DNA of 64,000 nucleotides from Guillardia theta CCMP2712. Its lineage: Eukaryota; Protista; Cryptophyta. The translations under genes and the position numbers were made by a program. Shown here piece by piece: positions 20,288 through 26,230 of this stretch (its first letter is position 1; the number at the start of each line of letters is the position of its first letter). The notes below the pieces were generated by a model. The model was not told the DNA's origin and searched no databases. It saw only the letters and a program-made list of their open reading frames with translations. Where the stretch lies: the NCBI RefSeq assembly GCF_000315625.1, contig NW_005434670.1:1070258-1134257 (forward strand), read 5' to 3'.

Positions 20288-20952
20288 GTGACACGTTCCA
20301 CCCCCTCCGCACCTATAAAACAGGAACAAGCAACACAAGCAGAAGCGCGAAGGCAAAACCAACACACAAGCGAAAGCCGTAGGCAGAAGGAGCGGACAAG
20401 GACAAGGACAAGGACAAGGACAAGGACAAGGACAAGGACAAGGACAAGGAAGAAGTCAAAGAGGTATAGAGAAGGTCAAAGAGAATTCGGGTGAGAGGAA
20501 AGTTCAAGAACAGAACAAAGAGCACAACAACGATGACGACTTGTCACTCGCCGATGGCTCGAAACGACGATAGCTACGAATCGTGCAAAAATGCTCCAGG
20601 TGGTTTAGCAGGTCCAGTGCCATGCACATGTGGGCATGGAACATGTGCTATACTGGGATTTTGCATTAGAGAAAAGAGCCGGTCACTACCACGAGAAGGG
20701 CCCGCTAGCCCTGTAGAGCGAGACAGGTTAAAGTTGCTGTGTGAGTCACAGTCAAGCTTCAAGGTCCTACATGTCAGTGAAACTGAGGAGCTGCACGAAG
20801 TAGAGGAAATCATCCAGGACAAGTTTAAAATCAGCAGGACGATTATTGACGAGCAATCGAACCTCGCGCACCAGGACGTTGCGATGAATGTTTCTAGGAA
20901 ATCTTGCAATCCTCGGAGCTCTGAAAAGGTTCACCAAGAGAAGCATCGATGA
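20288..20952 (+). CDS. Hypothetical spliced protein (boundaries approximate); contains a (GACAAG)n run at ~20395-20448
   Basis: Exon-like frame to 20952 (CTCGHGTCAILGFC...LKLLCESQSSFKVLHVSE...EIIQDKFKI). No family assigned. Confidence 0.4.
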
Positions 20953-21026: not shown

Positions 21027-23835
21027 TCAAAGTTTCAACTCCATGATCTTCACTGCAGGCCTTCTCGTCGTATCATATACATGCAGGGAATAGCCCTCGC
21101 TCCCGTCAGGAGGGAAGCGAGATGCCGCGCAACCAGCCCTCGGGTAGCGGATCGAGGCCTTCTGTCTTCGCCAAGATGTAGACCCTCCTGCATTGAACGT
21201 GTCATCCTGTCTGAATAGAAGCAGCACAACAAAGGTGAACTTGTAGTGACCTCGGAGAGTCCGACATAACGGCAGCAAGGTTGTATTGCGTTAGAACCTC
21301 TCGGAATTGAGCTGCGCGAGAAGAAATGCGTCAGTGAGAAGGAGATCACGGGGGCTCCTATCACCGAGAGATCGTGTGCTTTGACTTGGGGAGGTCAGCG
21401 ATGTGCGCATGTACCCGTCAAGCGATTGGAGATTGAATTGCGACATGGACGAAAATTTCTGGAGAATGTCCTGCCCGCACTCTTGACAATGCGCTTCCAA
21501 GAGAGCAAGAACAGACCTTGAGCGCTTCAGTGAAGGGCATGAGGCGAATGGCTGTGATCGATTCCTCCCACTCCAGCATGTGCGACTGGCCGAGCCGTCA
21601 GAGTAGAAATGGGAGAGGGAGAATCTACTGTGTTGATGCAGTCTGGAGATGACGTGGCAACGGCACTGAAGGCAAGGACCTGTCAAGTGTTCAACAACAG
21701 ATCTTCATGATATTCTGAGCTAACCTGTCGCCACCAAGTCTTGCTGACTTCAATTTTGTAAAGTGACAGGAGTTCTTCACAGATAGAGGTGGTGAAGGCA
21801 CAGATGACTTGTCCTTGCCAAAGGGTGATGCCGGACGAGTTCTGCTGCTGTTGGACGAAACCTGAGTGCAAGGGATTGAGTTCAACTTCTTCTTTTGGGC
21901 AGCAAGAACCTTCAAAACTTCGTGTCTGTGAATCCGCAACCTCCATCTCTATATCCCCGACTGTGCTTGAATTTTCAACTTTGGCTTTCAGCGTCCCGAG
22001 CAAGGAGCATTCCTTCTGGAACAACTGCCGCTGTGTGCCTTCAGTCACCCTTCTCTCTTGCCTTTGAAGGTATCGAAGGAGATTCACTTCAGCAAATTGC
22101 TTCAGCTGCAGCCTCCGAACTTGTATGCATGTTTCGTACAGGGCATCCTGCTTAGTGACGTTGGTAGGATGTGAGAGCATCTCTGCGTCAAGACAAGCGG
22201 AGCTCATTGCTGTCTTGAAGTTGGAATACACGTAGGGCTCGACCCGGATGGGACGGGAAGAGGAAGAAAGCAGAAAAAGCTCTTCGCCCATGATCGCTAG
22301 CACTTGGCTGGCGGTCGAGTGCCTGGAAAATTGGACGATCCCGTAGCCGAGAGATCGCCCGTTGTGGTCACAGGCGATTCTTGCCCGGCAGACTTCACCG
22401 AATTGAGAGAAACAATCTTTTAGTTGCTTCGAGTTGATGCCTCTGTCCAGCTCCCCAACCCAGAGAAGCCCATCCTTGACGAATCGCCTCACCACCAGAG
22501 TTCCTATCGGGACTTCAGGCGCCTCGTTGAGTAGCCGAAGAGCTCGGTAGCAGCTGGCCAGGTCACTGAACCTGATTGCAGCGAACGTGTGGCCCTTCCT
22601 TGACATGTGTAGGTCCACCCGCTCTACCGTCCCCTCCCCACAGGCCTCCAGCACGTCTTTGAGAGTCTCTTCCGACACATTCGGGCGGAATCCTGTCACA
22701 TAAATCGTCCTCACAATCTCGTTCGCCCTCCCCACAACCGAGCTTGGCTCTAGTCCGAGGAGGGAGTCCCTGCGTCCATCACTTCGCACACTCTTCAGGA
22801 GTAGAAGTCTTTCCTTGAAGTGCTTTAGGGCCAGTCTCCGGCGTTGCTCACAGTGCATGCATGTAAGTTCCTCCCACCTGGTCCCAAGGTCCGATTCTAG
22901 CGACCCCTTGAGTGCAAAGTGATCCGACTTCGCGTGCTCTGCCTTGGGTGAGAGGACGAAGCGCGGCTCTGCCTGCTCTGCTGGGGCAAACGGCTGCAGC
23001 AGGATCGGCCAGAAGCTGCCCAAACAGACAAACTGACACTTCGACAGGTACAAGACCTCTCGCGCGACCTCATCGCTGTCGTAGGATGCCACCGCCCAGC
23101 CCTTCCGCTCTCCTCCTCCGACATCATCGGGCAGCCAAACGTCACGAGGCTCAACATAGAGCATGCTCAGCGCTCTCTTAACGTCCTCCTTCGCCGCTTC
23201 CCTGGTGATCTCGCCTACCCAGACAAGTCCTTGATAGACTGCTGGACGGACTGTCAGCTGAATCCTCACGACTCCGTCGTTGCCCTGGCCATCGTGGAAG
23301 ACCAGCAGCTCGGAGTTATCGAGCTGGAAGCAAGACTGGGGAGAAACGAATCAGATCCGACCAAAATGCCAAGATGAGCAAACCTCGTACGCGATCTGAT
23401 ACGCATTCAGCTCTTCATTCGATGAGACCTGAAAGTTTCAGGGATCAGCTCTGCCATGCTCTGCTGTTTTCAGGAGAATATGATTGACCTGGGAGGATTT
23501 GAACCGGACATACACCAAGACAGAAGAGCATCTCGTGACTTCGCAATGCCTGCGTCAAGAGGATCATGGAACCGCAGGAGCAACCGACGTGAAGATACTC
23601 GATGACGTCATCGCCGTACAATGAAGAAATCTTGGACGCCAAGTACGACACATGCCCCTCCGCCCTGATGGTGCGGGAAGTTACGATTGGTTGTGGAGTT
23701 TGATGTGACCCACGTGATTCCGCTCACCACGATGGTTCTTGAGAGGTCATGGAAGGAGTTGGAGAGGAACCAGGAAGGGTAGACTTGCTCCGCACCCTTC
23801 CCCTGCTCCGCCATCTGCGACAGAGAGGTAGCCAT
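21027..23835 (-). CDS. Multi-RRM RNA-binding protein with two tandem DBHS-like (RRM-RRM-NOPS-coiled coil) modules (3' end approximate)
   Basis: RNP motifs IYVTGF/TFAAIRF and LWVGEL/LGYGIVQF; DBHS-type RRM2 tail FLLSSSSRPIRVEP; NOPS-like HFALKGSLESDLGTRWEEL; internal duplication SRTIVVSGI/VRTIYVTGF and GLVWVGEI/GLLWVGEL. Confidence 0.8.
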
Positions 23836-24335: not shown

Positions 24336-25170
24336 CCGCAAAAAGCAAATCGAGCGCTACAAGTGTCGGATCTGAGATTCGAACTCAGGTTGCCACGGCC
24401 ACAACGTGGAGTACTGACCGCTATACGAATCCGACATTGTATGTGATATAGTGCCTTACGCCTCATGGCCGAAGATGCTGAATGCAGAGATGATGCGCCT
24501 CTTGCTCAGCTTCTACTTGCTCTTCCTCTATGCTCCCTCCATGCTCCCTCCTCCTCCTCCTCCTCCCCTCCTCCTCCTCTCTTGCTTCATGTCATTACTT
24601 CCATCCTAGCTTACTGCCGATGCCCAACCCTGATTCTCCCTTCCGCATCCTCCAAACCGCTGGCCCATACCTTGTTCCTGCCATCCCTTAACCTTCTTGT
24701 GCTGATTTCCTCCCTCCTCCTGCTGTCGTTGCTTTTTTTCAGCTTGTTCTTTACCCTTACCTTGAGACAGGATCGACTAGGTGCAGAGAGGGCACGACTG
24801 CGTCGCTTCACTTGTTTGCTTTCCTCGACTTCCGACATTCATGGATAACATTAGGATTCGTCGTTATCATGTTCATTCTTGTGGGAAAGTCTCTACAGTT
24901 ACAATGTCGCTGCAATGATCAACGCAACGTGGCATTAGACGTTCGTTGCATGTTCCTTTCCTCCATACTGATGGAATAGCTTGGTGTTGGTCTTCAATTT
25001 CACCCAGCTCGACGTTGTGGCCGATTAACAGAATTCTTCTTGTTTCCTCCTTCCTAACTAGCTCTTGTCCAGCCTTTCCTTTCTGAACATCTTTGACTAG
25101 TCCTCCCTCTCTCTCGCTACCTCCTTCCTCTGCCGTGTTAATCTCTTTCTTGTCTCGCCTCATCCCATCC

Positions 25171-25528
25171 CGTCTCATCTACTCTCATCTCATCTACTCT
25201 CATCTCATCCCGTCTCATCTCGTCTACTCTCATCCCTTCTACTCTCATCTCGTCTACTCTCATCTCATCCCGTCTCATCTAATCTACTCACATCTCATCT
25301 ACCCCCATCTCATCTACCCTCATCTCATCTACCCCCATCTCATCTACCCTCATCTCATCTACCCTCATCTCATCTACCCTCATCTCATCTACCCTCATCT
25401 CATCTACCCTCATCTCATCTACCCTCATCTCATCTACCCCCATCTCATCTACTCTCATCTCGTCTACTCACATCTCATCTACCCCCATCTCATCTACTCT
25501 CATCTCATCTACTCTCATCTCATCTACT
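25171..25528. repeat. 15-bp minisatellite (CATCTCATCTACYCN), ~24 copies
   Basis: Visible tandem array with a homogeneous core and degenerate left edge; no unique spacers. Confidence 0.95.
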
Positions 25529-26230
25529 TGAACTTTCATCTCGTCTCGTCTCGTCCTCAAGGCTGCTCTTGGCTTGAGCACCCCCTGATGCGGGGAGGCG
25601 GGCTTGAAATTTAGGTTCTCGCATACCCCTACTAACGATAAATAAAAGAGGGGTAGGGGTACACATCACCAAGAGCCACCATGCGTTTCGCTATCGTTCC
25701 AATCATCTTCGCCCGCAACAGCAACGGAGGTAGATCGAATGAACACCATACTTCCATGCTAGCATCATTCTTGCTGTCTTGCTCTGCCTGCTTGCTCTGT
25801 GTTACCTTCTAAGCCTATTGTTCAGTGCCCTCACCATCTACTTTGTCTGTCTGCTGAATTTTGTTTGCGTTGGTTTGGCATAGTTTCATCTGTCTCTTCA
25901 CTGACTTATCAGTCTTTTTGCGTTTTTACTCCTCTTCTTACATTGTTTATCTTTTCTAATCCGAAAATGTTTTCTTTTTGCTGTCGCCATGTATCTGAGG
26001 CTACTATAAGACTTTTCTGTGATTTTAGTATTTCGAGAACTAGGGGCCCGATGCAAGTATGAATGTACAATCATGAATATCTGAGGGTGTGTATGCATGT
26101 TAGTGTGGGGGCATCAGTAGACGCTCAGGTTGGCAGGTTAGTTCGAGTGTTGAAAGTTCGAGTGTTGAAAGCAAACAAGAGGGGAGGTCGATCGTAAAAC
26201 AAACTTCACTGCTCCGCTAACAAGAGCGCA

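Follow-up and report, generated by a model that had tools for sequence, protein, structure and literature searches.

Is the DBHS architecture of NONO and SFPQ confined to animals, and can two of its units be combined in a single chain? These questions were raised by a gene of the cryptophyte alga Guillardia theta CCMP2712, which we analyzed within a 64,000-nt stretch of contig NW_005434670.1 (positions 1,070,258 to 1,134,257 of the forward strand; hereafter, the window). The DBHS family has been described as exclusive to vertebrates and invertebrates, and its members as obligate dimers in which RRM2 of one chain holds the NOPS segment and the distal coiled coil of the other (PMC4872119). According to reviews (PMC4872119, PMC9530788, PMC13592225), DBHS proteins are restricted to animals and form obligate dimers whose partners exchange freely, and a review of nuclear condensates gives only generic RRM proteins as their yeast counterparts (PMC9530788). 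In a literature search of open-access text, with the InterPro and Pfam species lists outside its scope, no paper was found that dealt with protist DBHS or NOPS proteins, with DBHS proteins in tandem, or with a combination of NOPS and SPOC; non-animal NOPS entries may already be present in the databases. Here, we found that one cryptophyte protein, P0001, carries two divergent RRM-RRM-NOPS-coiled-coil modules of the NONO/SFPQ type, hereafter unit 1 and unit 2.

The gene lies on the minus strand of the window (23835-21106) and consists of 11 exons with 741 codons and a stop codon, separated by ten introns of 43-63 nt with GT..AG borders (CT..AC on the plus strand). When the exons were joined at the GT..AG-refined borders, the translation was identical, residue for residue, to P0001, a 741-amino-acid (aa) G. 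theta protein (UniRef/MMETSP) that was recovered by a word-indexed protein search and is currently annotated only as "RRM domain-containing protein". All ten exon joints, including those of the 5' exons, were found in contigs of two public RNA-type runs, X1 and X2. In particular, a single 2960-nt contig of run X2 covers positions 23884-21050 with all introns spliced out, and run X1, from a second study, contains the same joints in two overlapping contigs. Because one contig spans every exon, both units and the C-terminal domain are present in one mRNA. Separate transcripts for units 1 and 2, which an initial annotation made from the letters of the window had named as a possible flaw in its reading, were thus ruled out by the 2960-nt contig, and a fusion created by misassembly was ruled out by the layout shared with a Hanusia phi orthologue and with environmental relatives. 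The initial annotation had placed the gene at 21990-23835; the place was correct, and 23835 is the true ATG, but the 3' end was set too early, with six more exons continuing down to 21106. The peptides quoted in that annotation are all present in a minus-strand open reading frame (ORF; 21683-23269), and a stretch of 16 residues within the long ORF, SCCPKEEVELNPLHSG, represents intron 5 (21909-21862) translated in frame.

Two consecutive RRM-RRM-helix units, as had been read from the letters, were recovered both by domain search and by structure prediction. Pfam RRM_1 matched P0001 with an E value of 1.6e-21, the best stretch being aa 389-445 of unit 2. The AlphaFold2 model of aa 1-575 (mean predicted local distance difference test score, pLDDT, 74.4; predicted template modeling score, pTM, 0.62) contains four beta-alpha-beta-beta-alpha-beta folds of the RRM type and helices at aa 244-281 and 498-561; in both units, a long coiled-coil-type helix was predicted directly after the NOPS segment. 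Unit 2 (aa 306-561) aligned with NONO 23-174, SFPQ, and PSPC1 through RRM1, a short linker, and RRM2 up to RPxxVEP (E values, 7e-12 to 2e-11), and the NONO strings quoted in the initial annotation agreed with the NONO sequence in PDB. When the 575-residue model was compared with PDB by Foldseek, the best 50 matches were all DBHS chains (E values, 4e-13 to 3e-11) and covered approximately 235-280 columns. With VIA-align, model residues 386-564 were superposed on residues 370-554 of SFPQ 4wik_A with a Z score of 12.6 and a root-mean-square deviation (rmsd) of 3.8 A over 169 aligned residues, and residues 387-531 on NONO 9glc_AD with an rmsd of 2.7 A over 129 aligned residues. The match lists of both programs were filled by unit 2, and thus this fold evidence concerns unit 2 and not unit 1. 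The NOPS-like segment of unit 2, which has decayed, is collinear with the NOPS of two single-unit relatives, P0062 and P0120.

In a phmmer search of PDB, residues 123-282 of unit 1 were collinear with RRM2, NOPS, and the coiled coil of SFPQ, PSPC1, and NONO; the 13 best matches of this unit were all DBHS chains (E values, 3e-4 to 1e-2), and the junction between the two RRMs, from beta4 of RRM1 across the linker to beta1 of RRM2, also aligned with SFPQ. DBHS chains were the closest solved structures for both units. The RRMs of unit 1 are degenerate, with Pfam RRM_1 reaching an E value of 0.21 at best over aa 30-285. Its RRM1-like fold, for which Pfam returned no match, was predicted to contain strands at aa 34-40, 62-69, 73-79, and 107-111 and helices at aa 45-57 and 92-103 (pLDDT of 71-88 by block, with one block at 60), and it is conserved in the relatives P0008, P0014, and P0163. 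In the RRM2-like domain, W137, G139, W178, W207, and P208 are invariant across the family alignment. The best conserved stretch of that alignment is the NOPS-like motif of unit 1 (PPHFV..HTLE.EL..RW..L...H.AQR), in which H237, F238, L244, E245, W252, and H259 are invariant; all of these but H259 occupy the R-F, F-E, and R-W positions known from animal NOPS. A profile built from eleven family members scored DBHS chains at an E value of 1.7e-24 and gave a separate match to SFPQ 198-240, which comprises NOPS and the start of the coiled coil (independent E value, 5.6e-4).

Several observations weigh against our main reading of P0001 as a divergent DBHS homologue. The Pfam NOPS model (PF08075; gathering score, 27 bits) had no match in P0001 or its parts at E values up to 5, and the relatives P0014, P0057, P0154, and P0163 scored 12.7-22.2 bits for it at the homologous place, which is below the threshold. 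The AlphaFold2 model was built on 11 sequences only. Superposition on DBHS chains was poor once RRM1 was included (rmsd, 13-20 A, or 11-14 A for unit 2 with VIA-align), and the template modeling (TM) scores by target in the Foldseek matches were low (0.31-0.55) because adding RRM1 raises the rmsd, as seen with VIA-align. Unlike the noncanonical RRM2 of animal DBHS proteins, which is without the RNP aromatics (GKGIVEF in NONO), RRM2 of unit 2 retains a canonical GYG..F RNP1 (LGYGIVQF, with LLWVGEL); the RRM2-like domain of unit 1 has KGWAVASY and LVWVGEI. In addition, P0001 is without the extended low-complexity flanks seen in the animal proteins. Of the NOPS segment claimed at the outset, the Pfam assignment failed, but a NOPS-type segment collinear with that of SFPQ was upheld by the family profile. 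Because the Pfam NOPS model was not reached, we describe P0001 as DBHS-like, that is, as a divergent relative that sequence comparison identifies as a homologue of the DBHS region, and not as a certified family member. The best Pfam NOPS match in the G. theta genome (contig C34; E value, 0.29) fell within an unrelated ORF and was rejected as spurious. The coordinates of all features are collected in table 1.

Table 1. Features of the P0001 gene in the window, and the G. theta SPOC domains used for comparison
Feature	Position	Strand	P0001 residues	Remarks
Coding exons 1-6	23835-23714, 23664-23599, 23549-23489, 23428-23384, 23335-21910, 21861-21725	minus		
Coding exons 7-11	21679-21629, 21585-21517, 21470-21365, 21311-21251, 21187-21106	minus		
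Unit 1 RRM1-like fold	23294..23739	minus	33-112	Crosses introns 1-4; degenerate
Unit 1 RRM2-like domain	22988..23257	minus	125-214	Aligns to SFPQ/NONO RRM2
Unit 1 NOPS-like motif	22844..22936	minus	232-262	SDHFALKGSLESDLGTRWEELTCMHCEQRRRL
Unit 1 coiled-coil-type helix	22787..22900	minus	244-281	pLDDT ~76-80; aligned with SFPQ coiled-coil start
Inter-unit linker, flexible	22730..22774	minus	286-300	pLDDT <50
Unit 2 RRM1	22484..22708	minus	308-382	Aligns to NONO 23-95; pLDDT 75-91
Unit 2 RRM2	22232..22471	minus	387-466	Ends FLLSSSSRPIRVEP; aligned to NONO/SFPQ RRM2 through RPVxVEP
Unit 2 decayed NOPS-like segment and long coiled-coil helix	21947..22174	minus	486-512 (NOPS-like), 498-561 (helix)	
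C-terminal domain	21109..21829	minus	585-741	Starts ITLWQGQV; exons 6-11
SPOC comparator 1	L017:1501-1881 (G000 C2:1003114-1003494)	minus		
SPOC comparator 2	L018:1501-1782 (C1:850297-850578)	plus		

A search of protists for the tandem layout, suggested together with the original claim, located it in H. phi and in several environmental sequences. The H. phi orthologue, P0002 (596 aa; EukProt), which the word-indexed search had returned together with P0001, shows the same tandem layout; within residues ~545-596 its sequence contains the inserted stretch VPPLCHSTCLLSRLCQ and terminates early with VRCSTPDKDD. Both features lie near Guillardia exon borders and look like introns retained in the transcript model. 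In an exhaustive search of representative sequences, P0005-P0008, P0011, P0014, and P0057, all from metagenome or transcriptome contigs, matched units 1 and 2 in one stretch at 29-35% identity; a word-indexed search with alignment A2 was dominated by generic RRM proteins and gave no further relatives. The unit 1s of the relatives grouped with unit 1s and the unit 2s with unit 2s, which indicated that the duplication is older than these lineages; the score between the two Guillardia units was 32 bits. Two RRM-RRM-NOPS-like-helix units in one ORF were also observed in P0012 (532 aa; marine metagenome contig L001:319-1917, plus strand). Unlike those of Guillardia, however, the two P0012 units are most closely related to one another (123 bits), and no C-terminal domain was seen in this protein. 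At the level of sequence, this suggests a tandem duplication that was separate and independent, or one that is younger and much less diverged.

The link between P0001 and the animal family is provided by the single-unit proteins P0062 and P0120, which bridge the two. P0062 matched DBHS chains in PDB over its full length (E value, 5e-32) and matched Guillardia unit 2 at 7e-22 and unit 1 at 3e-9; Guillardia unit 2 matched P0120 at 2e-26. Within the G. theta genome, no other locus resembling unit 1 and no single-unit DBHS protein was found. Contigs of 11-13 kb from many marine metagenomes, those of Tara among them, carry the cluster of P0014 (L020-L022), a relative of unit 1; its neighbors there are intronless ORFs without Pfam matches. 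One member of this cluster, P0157, was deposited under a Promethearchaeia (Asgard) metagenome-assembled genome; the contig may be a mis-binned eukaryotic one, or it may be viral. The P0156 contigs stop right after the gene call. Taken together, the presence of such a divergent protein in a cryptophyte, and of related sequences in marine protist data, would mean that the RRM2-NOPS-coiled-coil arrangement originated outside Metazoa or was acquired by an old transfer. A pre-metazoan origin of the DBHS architecture is plausible, with old horizontal transfer as the alternative.

Beyond the two units, the initial annotation had described an extra C-terminal domain beginning with LWQGQV and had suggested, with reservation, that it is SPOC-like. 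The domain is present and starts with ITLWQGQV, but Pfam returned no match for aa 560-741, including the SPOC model (PF07744; gathering score, 25 bits), and the leads toward SPOC obtained by other means were weak. A language-model feature search placed SPOC clusters first (score, 0.90; 187 shared features), BLASTP aligned the domain collinearly over 84 residues with a bona fide G. theta SPOC domain (E value, 0.017 for a single comparison), and hhalign against SPOC gave an E value of 0.009 with a probability of only 4.5%. Bona fide Pfam SPOC domains occur in two other G. theta genes (63 and 37 bits), which were used as comparators. The AlphaFold2 model of the C-terminal domain, built from 3 sequences, was unusable (pLDDT, 37.7). 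A competing weak lead came from a phmmer search of PDB with aa 560-741, in which aa 668-740 matched the helix-turn-helix of phage TP901-1 CI (E values, 0.006-0.05); although it competes with the SPOC lead, this match is probably due to chance, because there was no Pfam helix-turn-helix match and the gene is an intron-split eukaryotic gene. On these comparisons of sequence and sequence-derived features, we regard the SPOC identity of the domain as tentative, with somewhat less than an even chance of being correct. The domain has no paralogue in the G. theta genome, and a word-indexed search with aa 570-741 returned only P0001 and P0002. P0005 shares the start of the domain, W-x-G-Q-V-x-C-A-F-T; past ...CAFT, no recognizable continuation of the domain was found on its contig.

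How might two such modules function within one chain? We proposed that P0001 is a divergent DBHS homologue with two head-to-tail modules, followed by a conserved C-terminal domain, and that the modules pair in the manner of two DBHS chains, a reading to which we give slightly better than even chances. The arguments for pairing within P0001 are indirect: DBHS proteins are obligate dimers, and no other partner gene was found in G. theta. Moreover, each of the three relatives with both units showed a reciprocal asymmetry, which makes an intramolecular pairing of units 1 and 2 plausible. Measured as the mean BLOSUM62 score per column against less diverged DBHS-like sequences, conservation in unit 1 was 1.16-1.73 for NOPS and 0.43-0.73 for RRM2, and conservation in unit 2 was 1.29-1.84 for RRM2 and 0.10-0.98 for NOPS. 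This is the pattern expected if RRM2 of unit 2 is held by the NOPS of unit 1 and the remaining interface has co-diverged. In the proposed arrangement, the two well-preserved elements would thus meet, with the NOPS of unit 1 closing around RRM2 of unit 2; the second interface would bring the decayed NOPS of unit 2 onto the degenerate RRM2 of unit 1, and the helices of the two units would pack antiparallel. The outcome would be a single-chain pseudo-heterodimer in which unit 2 would present canonical RNA-binding surfaces and unit 1 would be mainly structural. P0001 would be an RNA-binding scaffold protein, probably nuclear, and its C-terminal domain may be a phosphopeptide reader of the SPOC type through which P0001 docks on a further factor. 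A complex prediction between unit 1 (aa 25-295) and unit 2 (aa 300-565) scored 0.34, with a control at 0.43, and was used neither for nor against pairing.

The asymmetry, the pTM, and the lone gene do not separate this arrangement from pairing between chains, in which unit 1 of one molecule would pair with unit 2 of another to give domain-swapped dimers or head-to-tail filaments; interchain pairing therefore stays a serious rival, even if we judge it less likely. DBHS proteins are able to polymerize through their coiled coils, filament structures (9gld, 9glc, and 9gni) were among the fold matches, and the inter-unit linker is short and disordered, at ~15 residues. However, the single-chain pTM suggests, within the limits of a predicted model, a compact intrachain arrangement, and the helix of unit 1, at just 38 residues, suffices for the core antiparallel pairing but lacks the distal oligomerization segment. 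A pTM of this size over 575 residues also argues, again from the model, against independent beads. A further explanation is that P0001 is a generic four-RRM protein resembling PABP, with beads on a string, a DBHS likeness that comes from the RRMs only, and no dimer-like architecture. Yeast PABP was indeed the top PDB match by summed score, but it owed this rank solely to its four RRMs all matching one and the same query RRM; it matches RRM by RRM, whereas DBHS chains match RRM1-RRM2 collinearly together with NOPS and the start of the coiled coil. An atlas shape search with the 575-residue model returned a mixture of PABP and NOPS-bearing clusters at TM scores of 0.25-0.33, with the PABP clusters at ~0.26; the atlas language-model feature search with unit 1 found generic RRM families only (score <0.9), which, like the missing Pfam NOPS match, agrees with a PABP-like protein. 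Against it stand the NOPS-like motif, which is the most conserved stretch of the family, and the best 50 Foldseek matches, which are DBHS chains throughout; in addition, no match to MLLE (PF00658), a trait of PABP, was found in P0001, and two of its four RRM-like folds are degenerate. We consider this explanation improbable.

An affiliation with the Spen/RBM15/FPA type, in which several RRMs are combined with a C-terminal SPOC domain, would make the helices a lineage-specific feature and P0001 no relative of the DBHS family. The C-terminal SPOC leads and the order of RRMs followed by SPOC, which is the layout of the Spen family, agree with it. No Spen-family RRM structure was found among the best PDB matches, however, and the RRM pairs, the linker, and the motif following RRM2 are all DBHS-like; the SPOC domain itself is unproven, given the missing Pfam match and a C-terminal model with a pLDDT of 37.7. 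A Spen-type origin is, in our view, highly improbable. Returning to intrachain pairing, a more far-reaching and more doubtful version is that the DBHS dimer predates animals and occurs in cryptophytes and some marine protists as a single-chain pseudo-heterodimer fused to a SPOC-type phospho-reader. If this were true, the reader could tether P0001 to RNA polymerase II or to another phosphoprotein, and P0001 would be a monomeric, partner-fixed DBHS scaffold without a known counterpart; the SPOC-like tail, if real, would suggest a direct link to phosphorylated partners. Intrachain pairing, if true, would mean that nature has already built the partner-fixed 1:1 DBHS heterodimer that structural biologists engineer, and such a protein would be useful for separating the roles of the two halves, for finding the indispensable NOPS-RRM2 contacts, and for biophysics free of partner exchange.

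Other elements were observed in the vicinity of the gene. A tRNA-His gene (anticodon GTG; 24363-24435) is located on the same strand, ~530 bp upstream of the ATG. Further upstream, a long tandem repeat at 25093-25614 reads as HLIYP/HLIYS units in a plus-strand frame and as MRVDE units in a minus-strand frame; it is probably a minisatellite rather than a coding sequence, and the 24-26 kb bin in which it falls shows strong skew of both GC and AT. Near the 3' end region of the gene, a downstream simple repeat of the dinucleotide type at ~20313-20525 (minus strand) gives (SL)n in one frame.

Compared with known systems, P0001 shares with the animal DBHS proteins NONO, SFPQ, PSPC1, fly NonA, and Caenorhabditis elegans NONO-1 the same order of RRM1, a short linker, RRM2 with RPxxVEP, a NOPS-type motif (P-x-H/R-F ... 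L/F-E ... W), and a long helix. However, the animal proteins have one unit per chain and P0001 has two; its NOPS is too divergent for Pfam, the RRMs of its unit 1 are degenerate, an extra C-terminal globular domain is present, and the host is a cryptophyte alga. With the Spen family (SHARP, RBM15, and plant FPA), P0001 has in common the N-terminal RRMs and a C-terminal domain that is SPOC in the former and only possibly SPOC-like in the latter, but in P0001 the RRMs belong to DBHS-type units that also include NOPS-like and coiled-coil segments. Engineered or chimeric DBHS dimers (PMC13592225), such as the SFPQ-NONO-SFPQ chimera 7lru, likewise concern fixing the choice of the DBHS partner, and 7lru was the single best PDB match for unit 1. 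Such chimeras are laboratory constructs that still form dimers of two chains, whereas P0001 is a natural fusion of two units that have diverged; with intrachain pairing, this fusion would lock the heterodimer at a 1:1 ratio.

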